64,000 nt of DNA from Monocercomonoides exilis PA203 (Eukaryota > Protista > Preaxostyla): assembly GCA_001643675.2 (NCBI GenBank), contig LSRY02000045.1, positions 496,001-560,000 of the forward strand, in the 5' to 3' direction. The position numbers and the translations under genes were made by a program. Below, one piece after another: positions 2 to 64,000 of this stretch; position 1 is the first letter of the stretch, and every line of letters starts with the position of its first letter. The notes under the pieces were generated by a model. The model was not told where the DNA came from. It was given only the letters and a program-made list of their open reading frames with translations, and did not search any database.

Positions 2-1357
2 GGGTCAAATACAACTGGAACAACTAATTCTTATACAGATAGGGCTTCGAATGGAGGGGCGATTAACATGTATGGTTTGTCATCAGGAACACTTTCAGTG
101 AAATTTTGTTCTTTTAATGATTGCTATGCCCATTGGAATGGAGGAGGAATTATGTGTCATACAATTAATTCAATCAAGATTGAGAACAATTCGTTCAATG
201 CATGTACAGCAAAAAATAATGTAGGAGGGGGGATGTATGCTTATTCGATTTCAACATGTGTCAGGATCAGTGGGTGCGAATTCCAGAAATGCAAAGCGAG
301 TGGCTCAGGAGGAGGCCTTTATCTTGCATCTTTTCAGGTTTCTGGATCTTCATGTATTGGAACAGAAAATGGCAAAGGGGAAAGTGCTTGTGTGTTTGAG
401 TGTTTCTTCACTTCGTGCTCGCTTACAGGTTCAAGTGGCGGAGGGTTGTGTTGTGTTACTGTTCCGGCTGCATTCAAAATGAGAAGCCTCCAATTTATTT
501 CGTGCAACGCAACATCAACTGGCGGAGGATTGTATTTTAATCCAAACCAACAAACACCTCCAAGCAACAACATTTATTGCTATTTCTTCTTCTTCCACGA
601 TTGCAGTTGCAACGCTTCCACTCCGTATGGCCACGATGTGTATTTTCAAGACAATTACAATCTCTTTTCGTCATACAACCCGTTCTACGAATCGTACACA
701 ACGAATAACAATGATAAGAGAGTGTGCTATTATTATAATGGTTATCAGCATACAGAAAAGAAGGAATGGTTGAAGGAAGGGATGAAGGATCGGTATGTTG
801 GGGTGAGTGGGAATGACGCAAACAATCTGTGTGGGATGAGTGAGGCAGCGCCTTGCAAGACCGTGGGGCATGCAGTGGAGTCGAGCATGGCGCAGCTGAG
901 CTCGACAATCACGTTGCTGGGTGGGAAGCATGTGAGCGAAGGGGAGACGATCAGTGTTGGGGAAAAGAAGATTTCAGTTGTTGGGAGAGGGAAGACAGTG
1001 AGTGTGATTGGGACGAATTCTCTTTCGACCTCTTCGACAACACTGTTTAGCATATCTTCTGGCCAACTGGAGGTGGGGCATGTGGGGATCGATCACAACT
1101 CGATGAGAAGTCCATCGCCGAGTGTGTTTGTGGTGTCTGTGGGGAGTGGGGCTCTTTCGCTGGAGGATGTTTTGATCGACTCTTCGACGCCAGGAGGGAG
1201 TGGAATGACGAAGTGTGTGTTTGAAGTGGCGCTGAGGCAGCTGAAGACGATTGATGTGGAGATTGAAAACATGAAAGTGAGCCAACTTCTGATTATCGAT
1301 CCATATTTTATTGGATTTGCATTGGGAGAAAATTATTTATTGTTTATTTTATTTTGA
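2..1357 (+). CDS. Beta-helix (pectin lyase-like) Cys/Gly-rich family protein, copy A (5'-partial, frame open from window start)
   Basis: Repeated 'CxFxxCxA...GGG[ILM]Y' rungs, then 'YVGVSGNDANNLCGMSEAAPCKTVGHAV', which resembles the DUF1565/pectate-lyase N-cap motif. Clear paralogue of 8 other copies in the window. Confidence 0.75.
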   Translation, partial: GSNTTGTTNSYTDRASNGGAINMYGLSSGTLSVKFCSFNDCYAHWNGGGIMCHTINSIKIENNSFNACTAKNNVGGGMYAYSISTCVRISGCEFQKCKASGSGGGLYLASFQVSGSSCIGTENGKGESACVFECFFTSCSLTGSSGGGLCCVTVPAAFKMRSLQFISCNATSTGGGLYFNPNQQTPPSNNIYCYFFFFHDCSCNASTPYGHDVYFQDNYNLFSSYNPFYESYTTNNNDKRVCYYYNGYQHTEKKEWLKEGMKDRYVGVSGNDANNLCGMSEAAPCKTVGHAVESSMAQLSSTITLLGGKHVSEGETISVGEKKISVVGRGKTVSVIGTNSLSTSSTTLFSISSGQLEVGHVGIDHNSMRSPSPSVFVVSVGSGALSLEDVLIDSSTPGGSGMTKCVFEVALRQLKTIDVEIENMKVSQLLIIDPYFIGFALGENYLLFILF

Positions 1358-1904
1358 GTTCATGGCACACTGACTGAAGAGAGAGTGAAAATAATTGAAA
1401 TTCTGAGATTAACTTTTTTATTATCTTTTTTGTTGAAATGACAAGCAATAAAGAGTTATTTTTTGTTGAGAGTGCATTTTCTTTACGGAAACGATTATTT
1501 TTTTTATGAATATGATATGTTGATATAAATTTTGTGGATGCATATAAAAACGGAATAAATGAAAAACCCACCAAAATCAATGACAAAATTGTTAATTATG
1601 AATGAATACAAATCTCATTTTTTTTTTTTTACAATATACCAAAAATGATTCTTTTATTGAGCGTTATGTTCCAAAAATTGTTCGACGTCAAGAACATTGC
1701 AACAAAAATCGAAAAAGTTATTATTATTAAGAAAACAGAATTTATCAACAGTTATGATATATCAGACACTTCAGATTGTGAAAAGTGTAAGATTGTTAAA
1801 GATTTATAAATGATCTGCTTTTGTTTTCTGATGATTGTGAATCATGAACACCACAGATAATCTTGTTTCAATGAGTGTTTTATTGTGAAGTGATTGAATA
1901 TATT

Positions 1905-2650
1905 CAAACTCTGAAAAACATATTATTTTCATTCATTTTTTGAAAAGAATAAATTTGAGATAAGTGAAGAAATTGTGTCAAATTGTTTATAGTGAACTGT
2001 ATATTTTTTTTTTCAAAATATTGTTCAAATGGAAATTTGTTCACAAATGGGTGATTGTTTTTGAAATCATAGAAAAGATCTGGGAGTTAATTATTTCCAT
2101 TATTCACTTTTCAATGAAGTTATTTGTATTGAATTGAAATTGACACAAACAATGGTGATGAACAATAAATGTGATGTTATCTCCTTTCAGAGAGTTGATA
2201 AATGTCATTTTCCAAAAATCATTAAAAATCTGAATTGATTGACAGAACGTGTCTGATCTCTGAAAATTATTTAATTTGAGGTTATTCTATTTTTTGAGAT
2301 CAGACACGTTCTGTCAATCAATTCAGATTTTTAATGATTTTTGGAAAATGACATTTATCAACTCTCTGAAAGGAGATAACATCACATTTATTGTTCATCA
2401 CCATTGTTTGTGTCAATTTCAATTCAATACAAATAACTTCATTGAAAAGTGAATAATGGAAATAATTAACTCCCAGATCTTTTCTATGATTTCAAAAACA
2501 ATCACCCATTTGTGAACAAATTTCCATTTGAACAATATTTTGAAAAAAAAAATATACAGTTCACTATAAACAATTTGACACAATTTCTTCACTTATCTCA
2601 AATTTATTCTTTTCAAAAAATGAATGAAAATAATATGTTTTTCAGAGTTT
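1905..2650. repeat. Palindrome P1 core: near-perfect inverted arms (~1905-2260 and 2296-2650) around a 35-bp spacer (2261-2295); diverged inverted homology continues outward through copies A and B
   Basis: ...gacagaacgtgtctgatctc(2260) pairs with (2296)gagatcagacacgttctgtc...; mirror positions sum to ~4556. Confidence 0.95.
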
Positions 2651-3204
2651 GAATAATATTCAATAACTTCACAATAATTTACTCATTGAAACAAAATTAT
2701 CTGTGGTGTTCATGATTCACAATCATCAGAAAACAGAAGCAGCTCATTTAAAAATCTTTAACAATTTTATTATCATCGCAACCAAAAGTGACTGATAAAT
2801 CAGGATTATTGATAAATTCTGTTTTCTTAATAATAATAATTTTTTTGATTTTTGTTGCAATGTTCTTGACGTCGGACAATTTTTGGAACATAATGCTCGA
2901 AAAAAATATCATTTTTTGGAATATTTTCTTCAAAAAATCAGATATTTGAATTCATTCATAATTTATGGTTAAATCATTGTTTTTTAGTTGTATTTTTTCA
3001 TTTATTCCGCTTTTACATGCCTCTATTAAATATTTATCAACAAATCATTTTCATAAAAAAATATTTATTTTCTGCCGTTAAACACATGCACTCTCAATGC
3101 AAAATAACTCTTTATCGCTTGTCATTTCAACAAAAAAGATAATAAAAAAGTTAATCTCAGAATTTCTATTTTTTTTCTCTCTCTTCAGTCAGTGTGTTGT
3201 GCAG

Positions 3205-5160
3205 TCAAAACAAAGCAAACAATAACCAATTTTCTGCTAATACTGATCCTGTTGATGATGGTTTGGCAAATAGTGGTTGACTCATTTTCATGTTTTCTAT
3301 CTCCACATCAATCGTCTTCAGCTGATTCAGCGCAACATCTAACACAGATGACGAGATTCCACTCCCTCCTGATGTGGAAGAATTAATCACCACATCCTCC
3401 AGCAAAAGAGTCCCGCTCCTCAGTGACACCACAAACACACTCGGCGATGGACTTCTCATCGAGTTGTGGTCGATCCCAACATGCCCCACCTCCAGTTGGC
3501 CAGAAGATATGCTGAACAGTGTTGACGAAGAGGTCGAAAGCGCACTTGTTCCAATCACACTCACTGCCTTCCCTCTCCCCAAAACAGAAATCTTCTTATC
3601 CCCAACACTGATTGTCTTCTCTTCGCTCACATGCCTCCCACCCAGCAACGTGATTGTCGAGCTCATCTGCGCCATGCTCGACCCCACTGCATGCCCCACT
3701 GTCTTGCACGGCGCAGACTCACTCATCCCACACAGATTGCTCGAATCATTCCCACCCACCCCAACATATCTATCTTTCATCCCCTCCTTCAACCATTCCT
3801 TCTTTTCTGTATGCAGATATGTCCAACTGCCTGAATAATATCTATGGCACACTCTCGTATCATTTGTATTCGTTGTATACGATTCATAGAACGGATTGTT
3901 CGATGAGAAGAGATTGTAATAATCTTCCAAATACACATCGTGGCCATATGGAGTGGAAGTGGTTGTGCATCTGCAATCGTGGAAGAAGAAGAAATAGCAA
4001 TATTGATTGTAACTTGGGGCTGTTGATTGATATGGCCTGAAATCCAATCCTCCGCCATATGAATATGCCGAGCACGAAATAAATTGGAGGCTCCTCATCT
4101 TGGATGCAGCCGGAACATTTTGACAAAACATCCCTCCGCCACAATTACTTGTAAGCGAGCACGAAGTGAAAAAACATTCAAACACACAAGCACTCTCTCC
4201 TTTCCCATTTTCTGTTCCAATACAGCCAGAACTAGAAACCTGAAAAGTATATAGAAAAAGTCCTCCTCCATTACTATATGCCTTACAGTTCTGGAACTCG
4301 CACCCACTGATCCTGACACATGACGAAATTGATAGAGCATATATCCCTCCTCCAGCACTATTTTTTGCAGTACATGCATTGAACGAATTGTTCTCGATCT
4401 TGATGGAATTTATTGAAACGCAAAAAATTCCTCCACCATAAGCATATGCATAACAATCATTGAACGAACAAAATTTCACTGAAAGTGTCCCAGCTGCCAG
4501 ATTATACATATTAATGGCCCCTCCACTTGATATTCCATCTGTAACTGAATTGCTTGTCCCTGTTGTATTTGACCCATTCCACACACACCAAGTGAACGAA
4601 TTTGCCCCATTGTCTGTCTGATTCTGTCTCGCTTGTTTCGATGGATTCCCTTCACTCCCGCTGACTGCAACATTCTGAGACCGATAGCACCTGACAAACG
4701 AGGTGTTCGAGACAGCCAAAGACGATGAAGGGCTGTTGAGCGAGGGGACAATGCCCCCATCATACACATCCCACACTGATGAAAATGAGCATCCACTCAT
4801 CAGAAACACTCTTTGGCTCAGCCCTTCACCCAGATGTGTTGTTTTCTGTGGATTTGTCGAGATGTTGAAGAAGGTCAGCTGCGTGAGAGATACAAGGGGT
4901 GTCAAGGGAGGCGCCAGAAACGGGGCTGATGAAACACAAAAAGATGAGAAATCCGACTCACTCACCAATACACTCCCTTCTTCTTCACTTTCTTCTTCTT
5001 TTCCTTTTCCTCTTCCTTCTCCACCTCTTCTTCCTCCACCTCCTCCTTGTCCTCCTCTCTCTCCTCCTTCACCTCTTCCGCTTCCTCTTCCCCATCCTCC
5101 TCTTCCTCCTCCACCTTCTCTCTCGCTCCTCGTCTGCCCCATCCTCTCATTCTCTCCCAA
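3205..5160 (-). CDS. Beta-helix family protein, copy B (651-aa ORF; true 5' end uncertain, upstream exon appears disrupted)
   Basis: Same scaffold as copy A, with a G/R/E-rich N-terminal linker followed by 'VLVSESDFSSFCVSSAPFLAPPL'. Convergent with copy A. Confidence 0.75.
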   Translation of the reverse strand: MGENERMGQTRSEREGGGGRGGWGRGSGRGEGGERGGQGGGGGRRGGEGRGKGKEEESEEEGSVLVSESDFSSFCVSSAPFLAPPLTPLVSLTQLTFFNISTNPQKTTHLGEGLSQRVFLMSGCSFSSVWDVYDGGIVPSLNSPSSSLAVSNTSFVRCYRSQNVAVSGSEGNPSKQARQNQTDNGANSFTWCVWNGSNTTGTSNSVTDGISSGGAINMYNLAAGTLSVKFCSFNDCYAYAYGGGIFCVSINSIKIENNSFNACTAKNSAGGGIYALSISSCVRISGCEFQNCKAYSNGGGLFLYTFQVSSSGCIGTENGKGESACVFECFFTSCSLTSNCGGGMFCQNVPAASKMRSLQFISCSAYSYGGGLDFRPYQSTAPSYNQYCYFFFFHDCRCTTTSTPYGHDVYLEDYYNLFSSNNPFYESYTTNTNDTRVCHRYYSGSWTYLHTEKKEWLKEGMKDRYVGVGGNDSSNLCGMSESAPCKTVGHAVGSSMAQMSSTITLLGGRHVSEEKTISVGDKKISVLGRGKAVSVIGTSALSTSSSTLFSISSGQLEVGHVGIDHNSMRSPSPSVFVVSLRSGTLLLEDVVINSSTSGGSGISSSVLDVALNQLKTIDVEIENMKMSQPLFAKPSSTGSVLAENWLLFALF

Positions 5161-6179
5161 TCCCTCTCAATAAAATATTTCTTATAACCCCAAATTATTC
5201 TACATCCATTTTCTTGTCTCTTTCTGATGCTCATAAAAGGAATCTTATAAATGATGTAAAAGAACCTTCGCTGTCAATGCCTTTTTATAATGATGATCCA
5301 ATAAAGCTCTTTCCCAAGCTGATCTCTCCGATCCCACTTCACTTTCTGTCGTTTGATGTAATTTCACTCCCTTGAAGTTTTACGAAAACGCCAGCAAAAA
5401 CAATTTTGTTCAAACAAATAAAAAGAAAAAATAATAAATCATATTAAAAATAGGTCAAATAATATCACCAATAAAAATGTCATACCTTTGTTTTCCTTTT
5501 CTCTTGCCAACTTTTCTCAAAGAATCATCGCATTCCTTGTCTCCTCATCGTTTTCATTATCTCCAACAAAAACAAAACACATTGCACCTCCATCCATAAA
5601 GATGTTCCTTTTGGTACTGTCCTTGAGGATATTCCCTTCTCCTTTTTTGAATAATTCTTTGTTGAACTGACTTTCCTCTATTTTTCTCCAAAATCTCTTT
5701 TCTCTTTCTTCTTCTTCATGCCCTCCCTCATTTCATATTACCATTTCATTTCCTTCTTTTGGCTCTTCTTCGAATGTTCCAAAAAATTCATTCTTCTAAT
5801 TCCTCTTCTTTCCTTTCTTCTTTCCTTATTTCCCTTTTATCATTCATTTTCAATCACTTTTCTTTTAAATATCTTCTTTTTCTTCTAAGTTTTTTGTCAA
5901 TTTTTTTCTTCTGCCGCATCATCAACATTTGTTTCCCTCGTTTTTGCTTCTAACATGATTCACCAGATACGCCTTCCAAAACCATCAAAGACCTCCTCCT
6001 CTATTCGCTTCAATTTTTGCTCCTTCCCATTCCACCAAACACTCTCCAATTATTATCTCCAGGTTTCTTAAAGGCGCCAAATATGCTTTTCCCCCATATT
6101 CCATGTTCATTCATCGACATCGAACACTCGTTAAAAAAAATCCTAGTTTCATAATATATATATATATATATATATGATA

Positions 6180-8240
6180 AAATACAGTAATAAAAAAGCA
6201 AACCTATGACTTTTATACGAATAATCTTTGCAAACTTTCTTCTCCTCCAAATATCGTTCCTTTCTACCAACAAAACCCATCTGTCCCTTCTTCGTTTCCT
6301 TTCTGCCCTCAAAAATCGTTTATTTACAATCCTTGGTCCTGCTTCCACTCAAATAACTCAGCCAGCTCCATTCTTTTAAAAAAACTAGCAATGAAGAAGA
6401 TTTCATCAGAAGAGCCCCTTTCCATCCCTTTCTTCTGCATCACCTTCTTCTTCTCCACATTTCTCCAAAAACAACATCAACACCCCTCCGCCACACATCC
6501 TCCATCTCTTCCACTTCATTCCCCAACATCCTTTTCCCAATCAAAAATATAAATACCTCCAATATTTTGCCTCTCTTTGGTGCAAGACACCCTTTCGTGG
6601 TCAGCCCCTCATCTTCCTCTGTCTCCATACCCCCAATGCAAAGTGCTGCGCCTGACGTTCCTTCTTCCTGTCTTCCTCCACCTCGGCCTCCATCCCTTGC
6701 CCTGCAAATGAGAGGCGCGTCCAAACGGTTCACAAAATAAATTATATAAGAATATGAAAAAAATTTTTCTTCACTTTTTTTTCTTCAACCCCACTTCTCT
6801 TTCTTATCAAACATACATCAGCAAAAATTCTCCCTCTTGCTCCGCTTCATATGAACCCTCCTCTTCCTGCATTTGAAAAAAAAACATTTTCTCCCCATTT
6901 CTTCTCCATATCTCTCCATCTCTCATCTTCCCCTCCAATAAATATATTCCATTCACTCCACCCATCTTCCACCCCTCTGTTCCTCCTCTTCCTTTTCCCT
7001 CCAACAAATTCCATTTCTCCAACAAATAACACGACCTCCACACCTTCCAACTCACAAAAATCGAAAAAACAACCCCTCCAAACCTCATCCCAATCCATCC
7101 CCCGCACATCCATTTTGCCTCTTAAATCTCATAAAAACACCTCTTTCTCCCCCAAAAAATCATCCTTTTATCGTTCCATTCCCCCTCCAAAACCATGTTT
7201 ATTCTCAATGCATAAATCCATCACCCCATTCCATAAATCTATCCTGTTGCAATCGCGTTGTCTTCATATGCCCATTTAGCCACGGTGCATCGAGTTGTGC
7301 TCCTTTTCTTTTGTGGCTCCAATCTGTTATGGAAAATGATCAAGAAATGTCAAATGCTCAAGAACTGCCAGCGGAATGAGAAGTCAAGATGCAAACATTC
7401 CGGCTGGAATAAATGAAATATTTCTAGTGATGAAAAAGCAGCAGCAACAGCAACTCTTTTTTTTTATTGGAAGCTGGAGTTGTTCGTTTAGATTGATGGA
7501 ATGCTGTCAAGCCACGATATTTTCAATGTGAATGTGAAATTTTTAATGTGTGTATTTTTTATTGTTCTGTTGATTGTGAAGATATTTCCATCCGTATCCT
7601 CTCCAAAGTCGTGATTCAGACAAATTATATAAAATGGACGATTTATTCTTTGCAGAATGGGAAAAGCAAGTCAGACATTTCCTTACAAGCATGTTAGAGC
7701 CTGAATGTATTTTATCATAAGTATTTATGCAACTTTTTTTGGACAACATGCGCGATGGATAGAAATTCGATGAAAAACGAATATTGATGGAGTGGATATT
7801 AACGGGGTTGGAAGATGTCCAAGGCTAAAAGGAACAATATCCAATTTCTATGAAAAGGGAGTTTTTTTAAAAGATGGGGTGACATTTACAAAAATATTTT
7901 GTTGGAAAGATTGGGGCAGATGACAGAAACAGGTACATTGGAGGCAGTTGGGACAGAGCAAGGTGCCTTTCTTGAGATGGAAAAGGCAAGACATTGATTT
8001 TACGCGCTGAGGAGAGGGGTAGAATGGCACTTGATTGCTTGGCTTGAGAGGCGAAAATGCGAGAAAATCAGGCAGTTTGGCGTGATGCAAGCAGCTTGGG
8101 GTAGATAACAAACAAAAATGGATTTAATTTATTTGACCCTTGCCTTTTGCATTGCGTCATTGAAGGATTTGCAGCTGGAGCAGAGAACGAGGTTGTTATG
8201 TTGAGGATATCTTCCAACAGAAAATATTGTTCATATGAAA
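6180..8240 (-). repeat. Shared ~2-kb 5'-flank cassette of the family (copy B version)
   Basis: Homologous to 20110-22330, 28415-30635 and in part 57960-59200, e.g. 'caaagtgctgcgcc', 'tccgtatcctctccaaagtcgtgattcagac', 'gaaggatttgcagctggagcagagaacgaggttgttatgttgagga'. Confidence 0.85.
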
Positions 8241-8918
8241 TTTCCATATGGTACGAAATATTTTGTCTTATGAATTTTGTTCCATTCTGCTCTTACAAAT
8301 ATTTTCCTCAATTTAAGAATTTTTCTGTATTTTTTTAACATGGTAATGAAAGACTTGTAATTATAAGGTTAGAGAAAAAGTTTGGAACAAATCGTTGTTT
8401 TTTTCATAAATGAAAAAATATTTCCCCATATTATCTCCGTTTTCAATCACGCCTTTATCATCATTTTATTTTTTTATTTATCTTTTTCTTCTTTGCTTTC
8501 TTCCTCATTTTTCTATTCTTCGTCTTCTATATTTTCAGGAAATAAATTGAATAAGCTTTTTCATTTAAGCAAACTTTAAACAAAGTTGATTTTTCATTTC
8601 ATTTTATTTTTTTCGTATTGAAAAATGGAAAATGGATATTTCTTTAAAAGAACAAATTATTCAAAAATGCAAAATTTGATGCAAACGTTATATCACATTA
8701 TTTTTTTTTAACAAATTCATTTGAAAACAAATGGGATAGAATTCTTTCATTTATGAAAATTTTTAAAATTTGTTCCAAACTTTTTCTGCTATCGTATAAT
8801 AATAATTCTGATATTGCAATAAAAATATATAAGAATTAAAAAAAATAAAATAAAAACAAATTAGAGATCATTTAACAATAAGATTGGAATAAATATAACA
8901 TTTTGACGAATGAAGAAA

Positions 8919-11609
8919 TCACAACGGAGGCGGAGGAAACGGGTTTTTAAAGTGTTTTTCGTCTTTCTTTCTCAGTTTTCTCAGCAGGTTCATTTGCTGC
9001 TGGAGTGAAGGAAGAATTGGAAGAGGAAGAAGTGGTTCATCATCTGCCTTCTGTTGCCTTTCTGACACAAAAGGAAGGTCATTCAAATGCAAATCTGTTG
9101 GATTCTCTTTCAGAACAGGATCAAATAATTCATCAGAACTTGAAATTTCACGACAAAATTCTGAAGCAGGGAGTGTATTTGCCAAAGAAGACAAACAATT
9201 TCTCTTCTCAATTGGTTCATTTGGAAGAGAAAGCAAAGGAGGCAAGCGTGTGCTGCTTTCAGAGCTGAAAGAAGGTTCATTTTGACTGAAAACGGAGTTT
9301 GTGTTAATTTGATCGGGAAAGAAATTTGAGGGAAAAGAGGGGAATGGATGTTGAGAAGAGAAGGGAAGAGGGGAATGGATGGTGGAATTGGAGTTATTCA
9401 AGAATGGATGCATATCGCATTCATCAGAAGGGAAAGAAGAAGAAGAAGAAGAAGAAAGTGAGAGAGGAGAAGAAGAAGAAAATGAAGATGATGATGGTGG
9501 TGGCAATGAAGAAGAAGAAGAAAGAGAAGAAGAAGAAGAAGAAGAATTTGAAAAAGAAGAAAAAGAAGGCGGCGGAGGAGGCGGGGGCAAAACAAATGGA
9601 GTTGAATAGCCACATTGAAATTTTGGATTCTGAAGCAGAAGAGGGTTCTCTATATGCTCAGAAATAGCTGGGTTGCTCAGCATTGTTGGGTTGCACCATT
9701 TCTCTGTCTCTTCGTCACATTGACAATATTCCGTGAAAAACGTGCGTTTATTCTCTGCTAATAGCTTCGCCTTCTTCTCTTCTTCTTCTTCTTCTTCTTC
9801 TTCTTCTTCTTCTTCATTGATTCTGTCTTTCGTGGTTTGTTGTGCAAATCCTTTTGGAATAAAAACATTTGCTTCCATTTTGTCTGGTTTTGTCTGGTTT
9901 TTCTTTGCTTGATCATCTTTCTTACTGTTTTCTTCGAATTCTCTTTCTATTTTTATATCTTTTTGCCTCATTATTTCCAATTGCTTTTCCATTTCTTCAA
10001 TAAAACTCACTTTCCCATCAAAATCTTCTTTTCTTTCATCGCTCCATTTTCTTGATTCTTCTGCTATCTTCCAAAATTCCTCGTTTGCTTTGTCTTTCTT
10101 CTTATTCTTATTCTTCTTCCTATTCTTTTTCTTCTTCTTTTCCTCTTTTTCTTCTTTTTCTTCTTTCTCTTTCTCTTTCATACAATCAAATTCTCTTCCT
10201 TCTTCATCTTCTTCTTCTTCTTCCTTTTCATCTTCACTTTCAAATCGCATTTCTTCAAAAAGCAATCCGTTCACCTTCAAAAGTCTTTCCATTTCTTCCT
10301 TCCTTTTCCTCTCTTGTTTCTTCCTCCTCTTCTTCTCTTTCTCTTCTTCTTTCTCCAGTTGCCTTATCATCTTTTCGATTTCTTTCTCATCTTCATCATC
10401 TTCATCTTCATCTTCCTCCTTCCTCTTCCTCCTCTCCTCCACCTCCCTCTTCCTCCTCCACACCTCCTCCCACCTTTCTTCTCTCCTCTTCTCCTTCTCC
10501 TCTCTCTCTCTATCTTCCCTCACCCACCTCCTCCTCATCTTCTCCTTCTCCACCACAATTCTGTCGCTTTCTGCATATCCATTCCTCTCCACCTCCACAT
10601 CAACAGCCACTCGCCCTGCCTTCACTGAAGGTGGAACCCACCCCGCTGCCATCCACACAAGATCGTTGTCTTCTTCTTCTTCTTCTTCTATTTCTTCTTT
10701 CTCTTCGTCCTTTTCTTTTTCCTTCGCTTCTTCTTTGTCTTCTTCTTTTTGATATTCTTTCTCTTTCTCTTTCATTTTCTCTTTCTCTATTGCTTTTTCT
10801 TCACCTTCACTTTCACTTTCACTTTCATCCTCATTGAAAGAAATAGAATTCACCAAAGACTTTTCCATCTTCCTCCCAATTTTTTCTTCTCTCTTTGAAA
10901 AGTGTGAATAAGCTGATGAATAATCCAATTTCTTGTTTTTTAAACCCTCTCTGCTTTTTTTCCCTTTTTTGTAATTTTTCTCATATTTCTGTGCAAATTT
11001 CTCATTCCCTTGTATTTCCTGTGTGTCTGCCTCTTGTTTTTCTTTGGCGCTTTGCTTCAGCTTTTTCACTGCTTCCCGAAGATAGCCATATCCCAAACAT
11101 TTCCTTTCTTTCTGTTCTTCCGTCTTTTCTGCTTCTTCCAATCTACGCGATCCTTCATCTTCCTTCCATTTTTCTTTAACAGTGCAACTTTCTTTTGTTG
11201 CAGCGACCTCATTTCGCAAGATAAGTGGAAAGAAATCGCTTCCTTTCTTTTTGAAGGAATCATTTTCTGTGTGAGTAACACTAAAACCATCACGCAAAAG
11301 TGACGCAGATGAAGATGTAAATGATGACGTGGGAATCCGGCTTGATTCAAAGGGCTTTATTATTTCGAAACTCCTTTTTTTCTCACTAGGTTCAATAATA
11401 ATTTCATTGCTTGATTCACAAATATTACAATCCTCTTGCACCAAATTTCCAAATATTCGGAAAAAATTACCGCTTTGCTCTGTCACTGTTTCATATATTG
11501 AGTAGGCACCACTTTCAGAGTTAAGAACACTTTTTTCTGAAAAATATTCAGAATCTAAAATATTGTTTTTTTGAATCAATAAAATTAATATCATTTCAAA
11601 GGAGTTCAA
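8919..11609 (-). CDS. Hypothetical acidic low-complexity (poly-E/K, poly-S/P) protein; start uncertain
   Basis: 896-codon open frame with charged coiled-coil-like tracts; no domain recognised. Confidence 0.6.
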   Translation of the reverse strand: MNSFEMILILLIQKNNILDSEYFSEKSVLNSESGAYSIYETVTEQSGNFFRIFGNLVQEDCNICESSNEIIIEPSEKKRSFEIIKPFESSRIPTSSFTSSSASLLRDGFSVTHTENDSFKKKGSDFFPLILRNEVAATKESCTVKEKWKEDEGSRRLEEAEKTEEQKERKCLGYGYLREAVKKLKQSAKEKQEADTQEIQGNEKFAQKYEKNYKKGKKSREGLKNKKLDYSSAYSHFSKREEKIGRKMEKSLVNSISFNEDESESESEGEEKAIEKEKMKEKEKEYQKEEDKEEAKEKEKDEEKEEIEEEEEEDNDLVWMAAGWVPPSVKAGRVAVDVEVERNGYAESDRIVVEKEKMRRRWVREDREREEKEKRREERWEEVWRRKREVEERRKRKEEDEDEDDEDEKEIEKMIRQLEKEEEKEKKRRKKQERKRKEEMERLLKVNGLLFEEMRFESEDEKEEEEEDEEGREFDCMKEKEKEEKEEKEEKKKKKNRKKNKNKKKDKANEEFWKIAEESRKWSDERKEDFDGKVSFIEEMEKQLEIMRQKDIKIEREFEENSKKDDQAKKNQTKPDKMEANVFIPKGFAQQTTKDRINEEEEEEEEEEEEEKKAKLLAENKRTFFTEYCQCDEETEKWCNPTMLSNPAISEHIENPLLLQNPKFQCGYSTPFVLPPPPPPPSFSSFSNSSSSSSSLSSSSSLPPPSSSSFSSSSPLSLSSSSSSSFPSDECDMHPFLNNSNSTIHSPLPFSSQHPFPSFPSNFFPDQINTNSVFSQNEPSFSSESSTRLPPLLSLPNEPIEKRNCLSSLANTLPASEFCREISSSDELFDPVLKENPTDLHLNDLPFVSERQQKADDEPLLPLPILPSLQQQMNLLRKLRKKDEKHFKNPFPPPPL

Positions 11610-52808: not shown

Positions 52809-54467
52809 CTAACCTGTCTCATGCCCCACCTCCAGTTGGCCAGAAGATATGCTAAACAGCGTTGTTGAAGAGGTCGAAAGTGCACTCGTCCCAATCACAC
52901 TCACTGCTTTCCCTCTCCCAACAACTGAAATCTTCTTTTCCCCAACACTGATCGTCGCCCCTTCACTCGCATGCTTCCCACCCAGCAACGTGATTGTCGA
53001 GCTCAGCTGCGCCATGCTCGACCCCACTGCATGCCCCACTGTCTTGCAAGGTGCTGACTCACTCATCCCACACAGATTGTTTGTGTCATCCCCACTCACC
53101 CCAACATACCGATCTTTCATCCCCTCCTTCAGCCATCCCTTCTTTTCTGTATGTTGATAACCATTATAATAATAGCACACTCTCTTATCATTGCTATTCG
53201 TTGTGTATGATTCGTAGAACGGGTTGTTCGAAGAAAAGTGATTGTAATTGTCTTGAAAAAACACATCATGGCCATATGGAGTGGAATTACTGCATCTGCA
53301 ATCGTGGAAGAAGAAGAAATAACAATAAAGCTTGTCATCTGGAGCTTCTGATTGATCAGGATAAAATCTCATCCCTCCGCCATATGATAATGCACTGCAC
53401 GAAATAAATTGGAGGCTCCGCATTTTGAATGCAGCCGGAACGCCATAACAATACATCCCCCCTCCATATTGACTTGTCAGAGAACACGAAGTGAATGAGC
53501 ACTCAAACACACAAGCACTCTCTCCATTGCCACTTTCTGTTCCGATACAGGAAGATCCAGAAACATTAAAAGTATGAAGATAAAGCCCTCCTCCATAATT
53601 AACTGCTTTGCATTTTTGAAATTCGCAACCACTGATCCTGACACACGAAGAAATCGAATAAGCATACATCCCTCCTCCATAATAATTTTTTGCTGTACAA
53701 GCATTGAATGAGTTGTTCTCGATCTTGACTGAATTAACAGAAACACACAAAATTCCTCCACCACACCAATGCGCATAGCAGTCATTGAACGAACAAAACT
53801 TCACTGAAAGTGTTCCTGATGTCTTGCTATACATGTAAATTGCTCCACCATTTGAAGCTCCATCTGAGACAGAATTTTGATTTCCAGTTGTATTTGACCC
53901 ATTCCACACACACCAGGTGAACGAATTTGCCCCATTGTCTGTTATCTGCTGTCTCGCTGGTTTCGATGGATTCCCCTCACTCCCGCTGACTGCAACATTC
54001 TGTGATCGATAGCACCTGACAAACGAGGTGTTCGAGGCAGCCAAGGATGATGAGGGGCTGTTCAGCGAGGGGACAATGCCCCCATCATACACATCCCACA
54101 CTGACACAAATTCACATCCACTCATCAGAAATGATGTTTGGCCCAGCCCTTCACCCAGATGTGGTGTTTTCGATGGATTTGTGGAGATGTTGAAGAAGGT
54201 TAGCTGGGTGAGTGTCATAAGGCGTGTCAGGGGAGGCGCCAGAAACGGGGCTGAAGACACACAAAAAGATGAGAAATCGGACTCACTCACCAATACACTC
54301 CCTTCTTCTTCACTTTCTTCTTCTTTTCCTTTTCCTCTTCCTTCTCCACCTCTTCTTCCTCCACCTCCTCGTTGTCCTCCTCTCTCTCCTCCTTCACCCC
54401 TTCCTCTTCCTCCTCCACATTCTCTCTCGTTCCTCGTCTGCCCCATCCCTCTCAATACAATTTTCAT
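52809..54467 (-). CDS. Beta-helix family protein, copy H (~552 aa; mirror of G with a mosaic 5' half)
   Basis: 3' two-thirds essentially identical to copy G; 5' third differs in patches. Confidence 0.7.
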   Translation of the reverse strand: MKIVLRGMGQTRNERECGGGRGRGEGGERGGQRGGGGRRGGEGRGKGKEEESEEEGSVLVSESDFSSFCVSSAPFLAPPLTRLMTLTQLTFFNISTNPSKTPHLGEGLGQTSFLMSGCEFVSVWDVYDGGIVPSLNSPSSSLAASNTSFVRCYRSQNVAVSGSEGNPSKPARQQITDNGANSFTWCVWNGSNTTGNQNSVSDGASNGGAIYMYSKTSGTLSVKFCSFNDCYAHWCGGGILCVSVNSVKIENNSFNACTAKNYYGGGMYAYSISSCVRISGCEFQKCKAVNYGGGLYLHTFNVSGSSCIGTESGNGESACVFECSFTSCSLTSQYGGGMYCYGVPAAFKMRSLQFISCSALSYGGGMRFYPDQSEAPDDKLYCYFFFFHDCRCSNSTPYGHDVFFQDNYNHFSSNNPFYESYTTNSNDKRVCYYYNGYQHTEKKGWLKEGMKDRYVGVSGDDTNNLCGMSESAPCKTVGHAVGSSMAQLSSTITLLGGKHASEGATISVGEKKISVVGRGKAVSVIGTSALSTSSTTLFSISSGQLEVGHETG

Positions 54468-54766
54468 CAAAATCTCAAATTATTCTGCAACCCTTTTCTT
54501 GTCTCTTTCTGCTGCTCATAAAAGAATTCTTGTAAAAAAAAATGTAAAAGCTCCTTTTCTCTGCCAATGCCTTATATAATTTATGAATCTATCAAGCTCT
54601 TTCCCAGCTGATTCAGCTCATTGCCCTTCAGTCTCCATCTTCTGCCATAATTCCAAATTCGCTCGAACGCCAGCGCTTCCAAGTTTCTTGTTCCCTCCTT
54701 GCTGTAGAGCGCCCATGCCAAAATTCCAATGTTGCAAGATATAAAAAATAAAATAAAATAAAATAA

Positions 54767-54918
54767 ATATGAAAATATGAAAATATGAAAATATGAAAAT
54801 ATGAAAATATGAAAATATGAAAATATGAAAATATGAAAATATGAAAATATGAAAATATGAAAATATGAAAATATGAAAATATGAAAATATGAAAATATGA
54901 AAATATGAAAATATGAAA
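54767..54918 (+). repeat. Tandem 8-mer (ATATGAAA) x19 in a putative intron; only ~3 units in the mirror arm (~48477-48500)
   Basis: Direct count. Confidence 0.92.
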
Positions 54919-55449
54919 ATATCATTAAAATAGAAATGAATAATGTTATTTTTTTCAACATAATTTTTTAATTTTTAGAAGGGAAAAATCAATCAATCTG
55001 ATAAAATAAATGCAAACCATTTGTATTTTTGCATCCTTATTCTTCAGTCTCCTTTTTCTTCTCTCCCTCCGAAGAATCCCTTCTCCATATTCTTCTTTTC
55101 CTTTCTCTCTTGAGTCTCTTGCTTTTCCCAGCATTCTCCTTCTATCGCACTCAGCCAGCCAACAACGCTCACTCCCTTCGCTCACACTTCATCCAGCTCT
55201 TTCCCACCCCTCCAAACTCCACCCACCAACCACCACAATAAAATACTCCACCAAAATACCATCCACACCAAAACCAGCCAAAACCAGCCAATCCACAAAA
55301 AATCATCCTCAATGCCTCATCCTCATCTGACAGCAGCACATTCCTTGCCTCATTGCACTCTTCCTCCTTTTCCTTGCTTTCTTTTTCTCTCCCCTCGCTA
55401 AAATGCAAGCAATCACACCAACCACACAAACAACACCAAATGCTTCATC

Positions 55450-57520: not shown

Positions 57521-57959
57521 GGAATTTCTATTTCATCAAAATCAATTCTTCATTGTTCTCTGTTTTCGATAAAATTTTACCATATAATATCTTCTCAAAT
57601 AATTGCAAGGTCTCTTGAACCTGTTCGTTTTCTTATCGAATGAATTTGTCATTTGTCAATTTCGAACAATATCATCACGCCTTTTCAATTATGAAAATAA
57701 AAATAAAAATAAAATTCTTTGATAAGCACAAACAAAAAATAAAGCACAAACTGCCCCTCTTTTCGGTGGTGCTGCGGAAGCTCGTGCTCCAACACGCCTT
57801 CCAGCAGTCAGAATATTCAGCGTTCACTTCCCTCAGAAAAACACAGTTGCAGTCCTATCTGCCTCATCGCTGCATAAAACTCGCCCATTCCAGCTGCCAT
57901 ATTTTGAGTGCATGGAACTTCCGCTCTGCGGGTGGTTGTGCCACTTTTGTTGAATTTGG

Positions 57960-59600
57960 CTTGGCTTGATCGTCTCCATAACAGATTTGGGGCGGATTCA
58001 GAAAAGGGGCACAACACGATGCGCTGTGGCTGAATGGGCACATGAAGACAACGTGATTACAAAAGAATGGATTTATTGTGCTTGAGGAAGGATTTGAGTG
58101 TTTGTGGAGAAACAACGTTTTGGAGGGGAAAGGAACGATAAAAGGAAGATTTTTTTTTGAGGAGAGAGAAAGAGGTGTTTTTATGAGATTTAAGAGGCAA
58201 AATGGATGTGTGGGAGATGGATTGGGATGAGGTTGGGAGGGGTTATTTTTGAGATTTTTGTCATTGGGAAGGAGCGGGGGTTGTGTTAATTATTGGAGAA
58301 AAGGATTTTGATGTAGAGGAGGTGGGGCGAGGCGAAGGGGGAGCAGAGGGGAAGAAGATGGATGTGGCGAATGGAATATTATTATTGGAGTGGAAGATAT
58401 GTGGGAGAAAGAAGGAGGGCTGGGGAAGAGATGGAAAAGGGATGTATGTTTTTTTCCAAATGCACCGAGAGAAGGGGGGTTCATATGAGGTGGAGCAAGT
58501 GGGAGAGTTTTTGTGGATGCGTGTGTTATTTGAGAGGGAAGTGGGGTTGGAGAAGAAGAAAAATGAAAGAAAATATTTCATATTCTTATATAATTTATTT
58601 TGTGAACCGTTTGGACGCGCCAGGCATTTGCGGAACAAGGGATGGAGGCGGAGGCGGAGGAAGACGGGAAGAAGGAACGTCAGGCGCAGCACTTTGCATT
58701 GGGGGTGTGGAGACAGAGGAAGATGAGGGGCTGACCACGAAAGGGTGTTTTGCACCAAAGAGAGGCAAAATATTGGAGGCATTTATATTTTTGATTGGGA
58801 AAAGGATGATGAGGAATGAAATGGAAGAGATGGAGGATATGTGGCGGAGGGGTGTTGATGTTGCTTTGAGGGGAAATGGAGAGAAGAAAAAGGTGATGCA
58901 GAAGAAAGGGATGGAAAGGGGCTCTTCAGATGGAATCTTCTTCATTGCTAGTTTTTTTATAGAATGGAGCTGGTTGAGCTATTTGAGTGGAAGCAGTACC
59001 GAGGATTGGAAATGAACGATTTTTGGGAGCAGAAGGGAATCAAAGATGAGGCAGATGGATTTTGTTGGCAAAACGGAGAAATAATTGAAGAAAAAGAAGA
59101 AAGTTTGAGAAGAATGATCATCATAAAAGATATAGGTTTGCTTTTTTTATTACGATTTTTCATGTATTATTTTTTTATGAAATTAGATTGTTTTGCAGGT
59201 ATATTTACTGCGAATATATGCCTATAGAATATTGAAAGAGAGGATACAAAATGCATTAAAGAAGTCAGAAAACAACAATTGGAAGGATGCATGGAGGAGT
59301 GAGCAGGCACAAAATATAAATTAAATAAAAAGAAGATATTTTTCTTTCTTTTTTTGAAGGTTTTGGAAGACATATACGACGAATCTTGTTAAAAGCCGAA
59401 AATGAGATCAAGGAATTGATGATGCAGCAGAAGAAGAAGTTTGGCAAATGTTTGAGAAGAATAAGACATTTTTTTTTGGAAGTTCGATTGAAAGAGAAAA
59501 CTTTATGAAAATCTGATGGAAGCGAAGAAAGAAGGGAACTGGAAAATCAGAGATATGATTTTTTAGAGATATTTGAAGAAAAGTTGGAAAAAGGAAGAAG
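57960..59600 (+). repeat. Shared 5'-flank cassette (copy I version)
   Basis: Homologous to 21010-22660, e.g. 'caggcgcagcactttgcattgggg', 'gaaagggatggaaaggggctcttc'. Confidence 0.85.
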
Positions 59601-61808
59601 ATGAGATATCTTTTTGTGAGGGAGTCATTGAACCCGTCGGTTGAGTTAAATCAAATTTTATTGGAGAATTATGATAATTGTTGTTCAGTGTGTGGAATGA
59701 GGGGGAGTGTGGTTGTGGTGAGGGGATGTGGTGTGGAGATGGGGAGAGGCAAGGAGGCAGGGGTGTTTGAGCTGGGCAGGTGCAGAGGGGTGTTTTGGAA
59801 CATCACGCTGAGAGGGGTTGGAAGGGGAGGAAATGTGTGTGGGAGACTGTTTGGAGGAGAGGGGAGGATGGGGCAGACGAGGAGTGAGAGAGAAGGTGGG
59901 GGAAGAGGAAGAGTCGGATGGGGAAGAGGAAGTGGAAGAGCTGAAGGAGGAGAGAGAGGAGGACAACGAGGAGGTGGAGGAAGAAGAGGTGGAGAAGGAA
60001 GAGGAAAAGGAAAAGAAGAAGAAAGTGAAGAAGAAGGGAGTGTATTGGTGAGTGAGTCCGATTTCTCATCTTTTTGTGTGTCTTCAGCCCCGTTTCTGGC
60101 GCCTCCCCTGACACGCCTTATGACACTCACCCAGCTAACCTTCTTCAACATCTCCACAAATCCATCGAAAACACCACATCTGGGTGAAGGGCCGAGCCAA
60201 ACCTCGTTTCTGATGAGTGGGTGCACATTTTCATCAGTGTGGGATGTGTATGATGGAGGCATTGTACCCTCACTGAACAGCCCCTCATCATCCTTGTCTG
60301 CCTCGAACACCTCATTTATCAGATGCTATCGGTCTGAGAATGTTGCAGTCAGCGGGAGTGAAGGGAATCCATCGAAACCAGCGAGACAGCAGATAGCAGA
60401 CAATGGGGCAAATTCGTTCACTTGGTGCGTGTGGAATGGCACAAAAACCACTGGAACAAGTGGTTCTTATTCAGATGGGATATCGAGTGGAGGGGCGATT
60501 AACATGTATAATCTGGGATCGGGAACGCTTTCAGTGAAATTTTGTTCATTCAATGATTGCTATGCATATGCTTATGGTGGAGGAATTATGTGTCGTTCGA
60601 TCAGTTCAATCAATATTGAGAACAACTCATTCAATGCATGTACTGCAAAAAATTATTATGGAGGAGGGATATATGCTCTATCAATTTCGTCATGTGTCAG
60701 GATCAGCGGCTGTGAATTTCAGAATTGCAAAGCAGATCGAGTGGGAGGAGGGCTTTATCTCGAAAATTTTAATGTTTCTGGATCTTCCTGTATTGGAACA
60801 GAAAGCGGCAAAGGGGAGAGTGCTTGTGTGTTTGAGTGTTTTTTCACTTCGTGCTCGCTTACAAGTAATTGTGGCGGAGGGATGTATTGCCAAAGTGTTC
60901 CAGCTGCATTCAAAATGAGGAGCCTCCAATTTATTTCGTGCTCAGCAGTGTCAGTTGGCGGAGGATTGGATTTCAGGCCATATCAATCAACAGCTCCAAG
61001 CAACAACACTTATTGCTATTTCTTCTTCTTCCACGATTGCAGTTGCAGTAATTCCACTCCATATGGCCACGATGTGTATTTTGAAGATCGTTACAATTTC
61101 TTCTCATCGAGCAACCCATTCCACGAATCGTATACAACGAATAGTGATGAGAAGAGAGTGTGCTATGCTTATTTGCAATCAAGCAGTTGGAAATATCAGC
61201 ATACAGAAAAGAAGGGATGGCTGAAGGAAGGGATGAAGGATCGGTATGTTGGGGTGGGTGGGGATGATGCGAGCAATCTGTGTGGGATGAGTGAGGCAGC
61301 ACCTTGCAAGACAGTGGGGCATGCAGTGAGTTCGAGCATGGCGCAGCTGAGCTCGACAATCACAGTGCTGAGTGGGAGGCATGTGAGTGAAGGGACAACA
61401 ATCAGTGTTGGGGAAAAGAAGATTTCTGTTTTGGGGAAAGGGAAGGCAGTGAGTGTGATTGGGACAAGTGCGCTTTCTTCGTCTGCAACTACTCTGTTTA
61501 GCATATCTTCTGGCCAACTGGAGGTGGGGCATGTGGGGATCGATCACAACGCGACAAGAAGCTCATCGCCGAGTGTGTTTGTGGTGTCACTGGGGAGCGG
61601 GACTCTTTCGCTGGAGGATGTGGTGCTCAACTCTTCGACATCAGGAGGGAGTGTAATATCAATATCTGTGTTAGATGTTGCGCTGAGGCAGCTGAAGACG
61701 ATTGATGTGGAGATTGAAAACATGAAAATGACCCAACTTCTGATTATCGATCCATATTTTATTGGATTTGCATTGGGAGAAAATTGTTTGTTGTTTATTT
61801 TGTTCTGA
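59601..61808 (+). CDS. Beta-helix family protein, copy I (735 aa, the longest copy)
   Basis: ATG start as in copy D; complete scaffold to 'ENCLLFILF'. Confidence 0.78.
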   Translation: MRYLFVRESLNPSVELNQILLENYDNCCSVCGMRGSVVVVRGCGVEMGRGKEAGVFELGRCRGVFWNITLRGVGRGGNVCGRLFGGEGRMGQTRSEREGGGRGRVGWGRGSGRAEGGERGGQRGGGGRRGGEGRGKGKEEESEEEGSVLVSESDFSSFCVSSAPFLAPPLTRLMTLTQLTFFNISTNPSKTPHLGEGPSQTSFLMSGCTFSSVWDVYDGGIVPSLNSPSSSLSASNTSFIRCYRSENVAVSGSEGNPSKPARQQIADNGANSFTWCVWNGTKTTGTSGSYSDGISSGGAINMYNLGSGTLSVKFCSFNDCYAYAYGGGIMCRSISSINIENNSFNACTAKNYYGGGIYALSISSCVRISGCEFQNCKADRVGGGLYLENFNVSGSSCIGTESGKGESACVFECFFTSCSLTSNCGGGMYCQSVPAAFKMRSLQFISCSAVSVGGGLDFRPYQSTAPSNNTYCYFFFFHDCSCSNSTPYGHDVYFEDRYNFFSSSNPFHESYTTNSDEKRVCYAYLQSSSWKYQHTEKKGWLKEGMKDRYVGVGGDDASNLCGMSEAAPCKTVGHAVSSSMAQLSSTITVLSGRHVSEGTTISVGEKKISVLGKGKAVSVIGTSALSSSATTLFSISSGQLEVGHVGIDHNATRSSSPSVFVVSLGSGTLSLEDVVLNSSTSGGSVISISVLDVALRQLKTIDVEIENMKMTQLLIIDPYFIGFALGENCLLFILF

Positions 61809-62193
61809 CTGCACAACACGCAAACTGAAGAGAGGAAAAAAAAATAGAAATTATGAAGTTTTCTTTTTATTATCTTTTTATTAAAGTATCAGGTGATGAA
61901 GTGTTATTTTTTATTGAGCATACGTATGCTTCACGAAAAAGAATTTTTTTTTATGAAAATGATTTGTTGATAAAAATTTTGTGGATGCATGTAAACGGAA
62001 TAAATGAAAAAATACAACTAAAAACAACGATTTAGTCATAAATTATGAATAAATTCAAATATCTGTTTTATAACAAATTATTCAAAAAATGATTGTTATT
62101 TGAACATTCTGATAAAAAAGTTTCAAAATCTTTGAAAATAGAAACAAAAATCGAAAATGCTTTAATTATCAAAAATATTGTATTTATCAACAA

Positions 62194-64000
62194 TCATGAT
62201 TTAAAAGTCGCTTTAGATTGCGATGATAATAAAATTGTCATAGATTTTTAAATGAGCTGCTTTTGTTTTCTGATGATTGTGAATCATGAACATCACAGAT
62301 AATCTTGTATCAATGAGTGTATTATTGTGAAGTGATTGAATATTATTCAAAGTCTGAAAATCAATTTATTTTCATTTATTTTTCAAATAAAAAAAATAAT
62401 AATTTAAAAAGATTAGAGAAGAAATCGTGTCAAATTATTTATGGTGAACTGTATATTTTTTCAAAATATTGTTCGAATAGACATTTGTTCACAAATGGGT
62501 GATTATTCTTGAAATCATAGAAAAGATCTGGGGGTGAATTATTCACTCATCTCCTTTTGAATGAAGTTATTTGTATTGAATTGAAATTGACACAAACAAT
62601 GGTGTTGAATAACGAATGTGATGTTATCTCCTTTCAGAGAGTTGATAAATGTCATTTTCCAAAAATTATGAAAAATCTGAATTGATTGACATAACGTGTC
62701 TGATTTCGAAAAAATAGAATAACCTTGAATTGAATAGTCCTCAACCTTTCAAATCATTGTTGGAATGGTATCAGCAATTTATTTTTTGAAAAAGACATTT
62801 GATCTTGAAACACTCATCTCTTGCTCATTTCTCAATGATTGTTTGTTGTTGAGTCTTTTCATCTCAAACAAATGTTTTGAAATTTTTTTCTTCTTGATCC
62901 TTATTTCTTATTTTCAGATATCTCAACTTTTGTTCAATAAGTGGTAAATTGGGAAAGAATTTGAATAACAAACTTATGAGGAAAAAGGAATGAGCATTAT
63001 CCTTTTTGAAAAGAAACAAAAACATGTCAAAAATTAAAAAGAATGTGAAATGAAATCATTCAATTTTCTTTGTTCCAAAATATTCAAATGTCTCTATTAA
63101 TCAGCAAAAACAAACAATTTTTCCATTAATGAAAATAATTTCATTTCACATTCTTTTTAATTTTTGACATGTTTTTGTTTCTTTTCAAAAAGGATAATGC
63201 TCATTCCTTTTTCCTCATAAGTTTGTTATTCAAATTCTTTCCCAATTTACCACTTATTGAACAAAAGTTGAGATATCTGAAAATAAGAAATAAGGATCAA
63301 GAAGAAAAAAATTTCAAAACATTTGTTTGAGATGAAAAGACTCAACAACAAACAATCATTGAGAAATGAGCAAGAGATGAGTGTTTCAAGATCAAATGTC
63401 TTTTTCAAAAAATAAATTGCTGATACCATTCCAACAATGATTTGAAAGGTTGAGGACTATTCAATTCAAGGTTATTCTATTTTTTCGAAATCAGACACGT
63501 TATGTCAATCAATTCAGATTTTTCATAATTTTTGGAAAATGACATTTATCAACTCTCTGAAAGGAGATAACATCACATTCGTTATTCAACACCATTGTTT
63601 GTGTCAATTTCAATTCAATACAAATAACTTCATTCAAAAGGAGATGAGTGAATAATTCACCCCCAGATCTTTTCTATGATTTCAAGAATAATCACCCATT
63701 TGTGAACAAATGTCTATTCGAACAATATTTTGAAAAAATATACAGTTCACCATAAATAATTTGACACGATTTCTTCTCTAATCTTTTTAAATTATTATTT
63801 TTTTTATTTGAAAAATAAATGAAAATAAATTGATTTTCAGACTTTGAATAATATTCAATCACTTCACAATAATACACTCATTGATACAAGATTATCTGTG
63901 ATGTTCATGATTCACAATCATCAGAAAACAAAAGCAGCTCATTTAAAAATCTATGACAATTTTATTATCATCGCAATCTAAAGCGACTTTTAAATCATGA
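62194..64000. repeat. Palindrome P4 (runs off the window); spacer 63057-63137 (81 bp)
   Basis: Mirror positions sum to 126194 (62317/63877, 62765/63429); arms look identical to the window end. Confidence 0.95.

Follow-up and report, generated by a model that had tools for sequence, protein, structure and literature searches.

The 64,000-nucleotide stretch of DNA analyzed here (the window) comes from the gut protist Monocercomonoides exilis PA203, contig LSRY02000045.1 of assembly GCA_001643675.2, positions 496,001 to 560,000 of the forward strand, and carries nine copies of a β-helix protein family, named A to I. Compared with their relatives, the copies are doubly truncated, in-frame β-helix pieces of receptors of about 2,000 amino acids, and we refer to them as cassettes. 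All nine are within the arms of four inverted duplications, P1 to P4. Tracts move between cassettes that are not arm partners and reshuffle the loops next to GGG motifs, and shared runs of residues demonstrate, mostly at the protein level, that tracts are also exchanged with long receptor genes dispersed over other contigs. We lean toward the interpretation that the arrays, built as palindromes, form a library of receptor-tip cassettes on which the dispersed receptor family draws by ordinary gene conversion; the cassettes would probably be a reserve of receptor variants. The ectodomain, truncated cassettes, palindromes, and conversion are not described in the papers on the M. exilis genome (PMC6759080, PMC8767320), and literature searches found no paper describing these cassette arrays.

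Truncated receptor tips in the window

The long relatives of the cassettes have a signal peptide, an ectodomain of 1,500–1,900 amino acids, one membrane helix, and a tyrosine-kinase-like tail. They belong to the tyrosine-kinase-like family of M. exilis, reported to be the largest in the genome (PMC6759080, PMC8767320). The window copies span at most residues 110–830 of a long receptor and lack both ends; they form an array of truncated cassettes homologous to the central region of a complete gene. Three truncation points were distinguished (T1, long; T2, short; T3). A signal peptide, membrane helix, and kinase-like domain are absent from all window copies and present in relatives such as MONOS_5659. 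Therefore, the copies are not complete surface antigens; a preliminary description of this DNA had suggested that the family may generate a surface-antigen or recognition repertoire. The cassettes and the elements associated with them are as follows.

2–1357, forward: 3′ part of cassette A; its open reading frame (ORF) starts about 570 nucleotides left of the window; type T1; protein in EukProt
3205–5160, reverse: cassette B; intact ORF, type T1; protein in EukProt
5750–8248, reverse: upstream carrier flank of B, non-coding
17298–19067, reverse: cassette C; type T1, with an intact frame in which the first ATG comes 58 codons into the conserved core
18108–18299, reverse: conversion tract in C, holding all 30 differences between C and F
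20103–22659, forward: carrier flank upstream of D; its mirror copy lies upstream of E
22660–24669, forward: cassette D; homology ends at about 24495, type T2
26200–28086, reverse: cassette E; 5′ part clean, 26200–27350 garbled
31679–33448, forward: cassette F, arm partner of C
48781–50394, forward: cassette G, type T3
52809–54470, reverse: cassette H, arm partner of G
53730–53900, reverse: conversion tract in H, of C/D/F type, also in a EukProt protein
57954–59600, forward: upstream carrier flank of I
59601–61808, forward: cassette I; intact ORF, type T1, predicted right-handed β-helix core; protein in EukProt
66594–64391, beyond the window, reverse: cassette J, partner of I, with a 1-bp loss in a T run

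The tip of the receptor is predicted to be a right-handed parallel β-helix of the pectin-lyase-like kind, because a wide structural search matched β-helices. AlphaFold models of the cassette core reach predicted local distance difference test scores of about 85–95, and the top VIA-align matches, with Z of 15–19, are β-helices. Structural neighbors in the Atlas carry Chlam_PMP or Beta_helix domains and include polymorphic membrane protein (PMP)-repeat proteins, and the receptor tip carries GG[AG][ILM] repeats. The β-helix assignment of the preliminary description is upheld by these models and matches. A Foldseek search against the PDB returned no significant match (best E = 0.02). The cassettes resemble Chlam_PMP and pectin-lyase-like β-helices in fold; unlike them, they have no Pfam match, and none was found in ten ORFs of the carrier flank and neighboring DNA. 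In a protein search, high-identity relatives were found in M. exilis only. A distant homolog in Streblomastix strix (P0144) is 29% identical over half of the domain, and the domain is therefore older than Monocercomonoides.

The reading frames of the cassettes are preserved. No stop codon interrupts the nine clean copies, in which the proportions of nonsynonymous (pN) and synonymous (pS) differences are 0.108 and 0.275, respectively, and the ratio of the corresponding substitution rates (dN/dS) is 0.34. All 12 indels in the core are multiples of three, versus 27 of 183 in the carrier flank, which we regard as non-coding because most of its indels are not multiples of three. The flank is 73–80% alike among cassettes of both clades described below, on three contigs, and was not seen adjoining long receptor genes at the loci compared. 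Variation peaks in the loops preceding each GGG motif, where pN/pS is 1.05, as opposed to 0.32 elsewhere; this is relaxed or mildly diversifying evolution, short of proof of positive selection. The scaffold had been called nearly invariant, which is an overstatement: of the 463 columns, 298 do not vary among the eight non-redundant copies, and the DNA of non-partner copies is 83–90% alike, except for C, D, and F at 93–95%. The T1 copies end in a hydrophobic tail, and C, F, and the more distant cassette K have 57 in-frame conserved codons ahead of their first ATG.

The T1 end was considered as a retained intron of a longer gene and this was rejected, as long genes run straight through that point and neither a downstream exon nor a kinase tail is present near the window copies. 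A family copy in L008 (10001–14294) has a near-complete N-terminus but is cut off at T1 as well, 1.9 kb before its contig ends. Two nearby receptor genes of the full-length type (L003, 10001–17067, and L007, 9944–16828) carry in-frame stops downstream of an intact cassette-covered tip.

Tract exchange among cassettes and with long receptor genes

Segmental conversion had been suspected from the mosaic sharing of loops, and the cassettes bear it out. The pairwise homoplasy index (PHI) recombination test gives z = −15.9 for all sites and −2.6 to −3.7 for synonymous sites alone. Arm partners C and F differ at 30 positions, all within 190 nucleotides, at which C equals D in 30 of 30 cases and F equals I in 24 of 30. 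Similarly, H is of the C/D/F type at 37 of the 44 sites at which it differs from G. Because the tracts that distinguish near-identical partners match non-partner copies, the novelty within a palindrome comes from other cassettes. The proposal that the palindrome arms are themselves the source of diversity is thus not supported; the arms mainly store duplicate copies.

The exchange with full-length receptor genes on other contigs was missed by the preliminary description. We compared the cassettes of this one M. exilis strain with a sample of long genes of up to about 2,190 amino acids, longer ones lying outside the search; broken genes were searched piecewise, with no spliced models joined. 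MONOS_14295, located on another contig, encodes a protein of 1,784 amino acids with a signal peptide, of which 546 amino acids are tiled by runs identical to different cassettes. These include 99 amino acids identical to G/H (the 3′ part of G), 44 identical to C/D, and 37 identical to I. The intact gene MONOS_5659 contains a 57-residue run identical to H against a background of 64%, and both genes are complete genes with the structure of segmental mosaics of different cassettes. At the DNA level, B and L007 share a perfect 70-nucleotide tract across a variable loop against a background of 75%. In the interval covered by cassettes, MONOS_14295 is about 55–95% identical per 50-residue window to five long genes of the same clade, with a few windows lower; before residue 100 and after residue 900, the identity to the same genes is 12–31%.

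The array cassettes form two clades, which share arrays on two contigs. Of 30 long genes, 8–10 mix the two clades, compared with none of the 77 array cassettes (p = 1.8e-5 in a Fisher test, for a run length of 4). In a cross-validation with diagnostic sites from half of the cassettes, the values are 0.26 for long genes and 0.00 for cassettes. At equal sample size, the best match of long-gene windows is a cassette in 113 cases and a long gene in 54, and the longest discordant patches are won by cassettes by wide margins. Net flow into the long genes is partly shown by these sequence comparisons. An inverted-repeat unit at L010 (9136–15491) has 534-nucleotide repeats, 99.6% identical, around a clade-mixing family fragment and a DDE_1 transposase gene; it may be a transposon that picked up the tip of a receptor.

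Many long genes, spread over many contigs, carry patches, and no single expression site was found. L003, the nearest long gene on the same contig, was rejected as such a site: two nonsense stops and a frameshift interrupt it, it shares no perfect tract longer than 63 nucleotides with a window cassette, and better matches are in genes on other contigs.

Palindromes and their pivots

Self-comparison of the window located the nine copies in the arms of four palindromes, where they had been described. The predicted partner of I also exists: it is cassette J, just outside the window. Orientation alternates along the array as K−, A+, B−, C−, D+, E−, F+, G+, H−, I+, J−. The palindromes and their centers are as follows; several centers resemble miniature inverted-repeat transposable elements (MITEs).

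−1095 to 5647 (1–5647 inside the window): palindrome P1 (A/B), center 2260/2296
2261–2295: P1 spacer, 35 nucleotides
16234–34505: palindrome P2 (C, D, E, F), center 25481/25759, outer arms approximately 100% alike
25482–25758: P2 pivot, a MITE-like hairpin of about 205 nucleotides in a 277-nucleotide imperfect spacer, homologous to the P3 pivot (89%)
48436–54813: palindrome P3 (G/H), center 51402/51801, inner arm ends 51480/51721
51481–51720: P3 pivot, a MITE-like hairpin, DNA fold z = −4.1, exact in short-read contigs
57631–68558 (to 64000 inside the window): palindrome P4 (I/J), arms 99.2% alike, spacer of 73–81 nucleotides
62994–63200: P4 pivot, MITE-like, the same pivot as in L004, a 17-kb palindrome on another contig (82%)
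L002 1–3620 (about −10565 to −6950 in window coordinates): cassette K, type T2, and a fifth palindrome center, formed by a 270-nucleotide MITE-like element

The arms of P1 are about 83% alike overall, with 80–90% in the genes and 95–99% in the 500 nucleotides adjoining the center. P1 is a fold-back inside a 3′ flank common to I and J, where the flank runs on further. In P2, C and F face outward; an older inverted duplication has placed them head-to-head with D and E. The inner 1.8 kb of the two P3 arms are identical, and P3 arm homology extends outward to 48335/55044. An eight-nucleotide tandem repeat is present near the outer ends of P3, with about eight degenerate copies at 48439–48503 and 20 perfect copies at 54765–54922. 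Just outside the left end of P2, at 15779–16099, is a small hairpin element that is imperfect overall; its arms contain tandem 19-mers, and a perfect hairpin lies inside it. A degenerate second copy of the element is at 14450–14838. MITE-like pieces of the K-pivot family (34521–35022) start 16 nucleotides past the right end of P2, and hairpin elements therefore abut both outer ends of this palindrome.

The palindrome architecture is real, and the concern of the preliminary description about assembly fold-backs is countered by inherited pivots, a P3 spacer that is exact in short reads, and identical proteins in EukProt. The assembly was built with Canu on nanopore reads and polished with Nanopolish and Pilon, and its authors caution about poor polishing of multi-copy regions (PMC8767320). 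The short-read evidence comes from contigs of older runs. In one run, the P3 spacer has a depth of about 163 compared with 290–450 on arm pieces, contig depth being a weak measure; no short-read contig bridges a pivot by 31 nucleotides on both sides. EukProt contains proteins identical to A, B, and I, to the first 548 amino acids of D, and to the mosaic first 245 amino acids of H. This gene set appears to derive from an older 454 assembly, because its models differ from those of NCBI at the same loci. The junction in D is also present in short-read DNA and RNA contigs. Cassette E contains gaps of 50–70 nucleotides and garbled stretches. Of the words in 25800–27800, a fraction of 0.45 was found in the best short-read run, compared with 0.46 predicted if all 31-mers specific to E were absent. 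The deletions of E are nanopore noise, and such garbling of inverted duplicates is already known (PMC7229812).

P2, P3, P4, the K center, and L004 turn on elements of 190–270 nucleotides with a common terminal motif, which is also carried by a free-standing hairpin element in L007. The pivot is thus a short inverted repeat with a spacer that existed beforehand and also occurs on its own; the label MITE-like rests on the terminal motif and the hairpin. Three of the four window palindromes have such a pivot, and P1 has only its 35-nucleotide spacer. Since P2, P3, and P4 pivot on a MITE-like hairpin, the palindromes look like fold-back duplications, the pivot being observed and the mechanism proposed. 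The suggestion of a purpose-built recombination platform finds no support in palindromes that pivot in this way. Large inverted duplications on a pre-existing short hairpin with a spacer are likewise produced by ODIRA (origin-dependent inverted-repeat amplification), which occurs at short interrupted inverted repeats, and by fold-back repair (PMC4689423). Unlike in those cases, the M. exilis hairpins are MITE-like, inherited with the unit, and recurrent in the arrays. ODIRA and break-induced fold-back cannot be told apart here, as the sequence would be compatible with either. Around the P3-type element (50785–51862), short-read contigs show several alternative joints between arm and pivot, which suggests that pivots of this family carry further palindromes or deletions at other places.

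Mammalian Y-chromosome palindromes have near-identical arms carrying gene pairs in a single-copy setting, as do those of M. exilis. In contrast to the Y palindromes, the M. exilis arms are 1–9 kb long, and what is new between two arms derives from sequences beyond the palindrome. A recent origin may explain the identity of the arms as well as conversion between them does. The pivots of P4 and L004 are 82% alike, yet the arms of each palindrome are more than 99% alike; this, and the 95–99% identity near the P1 center, fits either arm homogenization or repeated recent fold-back at the same hairpin.

Elsewhere in the genome, an association with palindromes was seen for the array cassettes sampled but not for the other members sampled. 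In small, hand-picked samples, the other array-cassette loci are in palindromes or inverted pairs in four of four cases (L004, 99.5%; L005, 96.8%; L006, 75%; L012, 89%), as opposed to none of six long or dispersed members.

Three further coding regions of the window are on the reverse strand. A 2,264-codon frame at 37081–43872, between P2 and P3, is inflated by Glu/Lys/Ser-rich runs and has FAM91 N- and C-terminal domains; it is an ordinary gene. At 13283–13948 lies an exon that encodes a FAM221A/B domain, and at 8922–11615 a low-complexity, Glu/Lys-rich ORF of 898 codons without a Pfam match.

Competing explanations and known systems

In the interpretation we lean toward, the cassettes are donor-like, in-frame pieces (approximately residues 110–830) of the outer β-helix region, each embedded in a shared non-coding carrier. 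Fold-back duplication at MITE-like hairpins would have multiplied them in alternating orientation. Homologous recombination copies tracts of about 50–400 nucleotides between cassettes, giving the loop reshuffling seen next to the GGG motifs. Tracts also pass between cassettes and dispersed long receptors, with a probable net flow toward the latter. The result would be a ligand-binding tip that varies across the receptor family and that, judging from its fold and the habitat of the organism, most likely recognizes bacteria or their polysaccharides. M. exilis is reported to be monoploid and to lack non-homologous end joining while retaining homologous recombination (PMC6759080). Repair-driven conversion over generations would suit such an organism, rather than a timed switch at one site.

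Several observations weigh against a library that feeds the receptors. When discordant patches (W-type in non-W long genes) were compared with ten random cassettes and with W-type long genes, the match was longer to the cassettes in 6 cases and to the long genes in 9. With all 24 cassettes, there were 8 wins, 5 ties, and 2 losses, and the outcome of this strictest direction test as a whole was mixed. Runs from long genes cover 0.53–0.83 of the cassettes and runs from other cassettes 0.56–0.82, and because of this near-symmetry the exchange may be two-way. Many long genes are broken, such as L003 and L007, and the length limit leaves the long-gene sample incomplete. One RNA library also contains exact contigs over a G/H-type 3′ end and a D/K-type junction, at a low depth of 13–15. 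RNA contigs over the coding part of G have mostly the letters of other paralogs. Such contigs give neither the level nor the copy of origin; weak transcription of some cassettes is possible. The idea of a hairpin RNA spanning a palindrome center was rejected, as no RNA contig covers 50900–52499 in P3, although absence from contigs is weak evidence.

The cassettes could instead be a by-product of inverted duplications that, seeded by MITEs, accidentally amplified two receptor fragments; the resulting pool would convert in both directions with no selected reservoir. The open frames would then persist because functional genes keep overwriting the fragments (concerted evolution). This agrees with the MITE-like pivots, the near-symmetric coverage, the mixed outcome of the strict direction test, and the interspersion of cassettes and long genes in the FastTree phylogeny. 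It is harder to reconcile with the lack of other-clade patches in the 77 cassettes, though long genes of both types exist and the clades are neighbors in shared arrays. Nor does it account for frames that are intact across the whole cassette while parts upstream decay, or for the same carrier flank being kept in both clades. We judge this explanation rather unlikely.

A stronger form of the library interpretation, in which an active system working on the scale of cell generations uses cassette libraries to template the β-helix tips of many receptor pseudokinases, appears doubtful to us. If true, a unicellular eukaryote would possess a variable recognition repertoire for bacteria, similar to variable lymphocyte receptors (VLRs) or chicken immunoglobulins (Igs), with no single expression locus.

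It is improbable that the cassettes are genes in their own right, encoding short β-helix proteins (decoys, or proteins anchored by the T1 tail) that are under purifying selection and diversified by conversion. The dN/dS ratio, the hydrophobic T1 tails, and the exact RNA contigs, none of which crosses the P3 center, would be expected of such genes. However, the cassettes lack a signal peptide, end at three unrelated truncation points, and in C, F, and K have conserved codons before the first ATG, and at several G-specific sites only the letters of other paralogs are found in RNA contigs.

Finally, nanopore fold-back reads and polishing with multi-mapping short reads could in principle have produced both the palindromes and the mosaics as artefacts, in line with the garbling of E, the homopolymer frameshift in J, the polishing caution (PMC8767320), and the lack of bridging contigs. 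This is very improbable, given the pivots shared by P2 and P3 and by P4 and L004, P1 arms that differ by 15–20% with both frames intact, the exact P3 spacer at a depth of about 163 against 290–450 on arm pieces, the exact EukProt matches including the mosaic 5′ part of H, and one-arm garbling as a known nanopore signature of inverted duplicates within one molecule (PMC7229812).

The palindromes themselves are the more ordinary part of the library interpretation, and the receptor exchange is the more interesting one. Conversion templated by cassettes is known from pathogen antigens and vertebrate immune receptors; here, it apparently acts on dispersed signaling-type receptors of a commensal protist. 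This would account for some of the genome's unclassified repeats, and it provides a case in which the origin of recognition diversity in a monoploid eukaryote that lacks end joining can be tested. The library interpretation predicts that named cassettes can be identified as sources of the patches in receptor genes and that these patches vary among strains or clones.

In Borrelia, the vlsS arrays consist of truncated cassettes with about 80–90% identity to the central region of the complete vlsE gene, which they alter by segmental conversion; M. exilis likewise has truncated cassettes, segmental conversion, and variable regions in a constant frame (PMC11499132). Unlike vlsE, the M. exilis system has many dispersed receptor genes that carry patches, the targeted protein is a membrane receptor bearing a kinase-like tail rather than a lipoprotein, and its arrays are MITE-centered palindromes. 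The flow in vlsE is one-way and switching occurs within an infection, whereas the direction in M. exilis is only partly shown. Since a single expression site is lacking, the flow may be two-way, and switching would go beyond the evidence of these sequences, we do not regard the array as a member of the vlsE kind.

Giardia muris, also a metamonad, has identical variant-specific surface protein (VSP) genes in tail-to-tail and head-to-head pairs and arrays of pseudo-VSP genes without signal peptides (PMC7641422). M. exilis resembles it in the inverted pairs, the copy arrays lacking signal peptides, and the evidence of recombination or segmental conversion. In G. muris, complete genes form the inverted pairs, and the silent pseudogene arrays run linearly next to telomeres (PMC7641422). 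In M. exilis, by contrast, the truncated copies are the palindromic ones, they are contig-internal with low-level RNA, and the protein is a β-helix receptor rather than a Cys-rich VSP.

The donor pieces of chicken Ig (pseudo-V) and lamprey VLR genes are leaderless, mostly in frame, and in mixed orientations, and they template the variable tip of a receptor. Diversification in these animals is a somatic process that depends on AID/CDA deaminases and targets a single locus. The M. exilis cassettes are similarly leaderless, in-frame pieces in mixed orientations that correspond to the tip of a putative recognition receptor; unlike the chicken and lamprey systems, our interpretation invokes no dedicated enzyme or developmental program.

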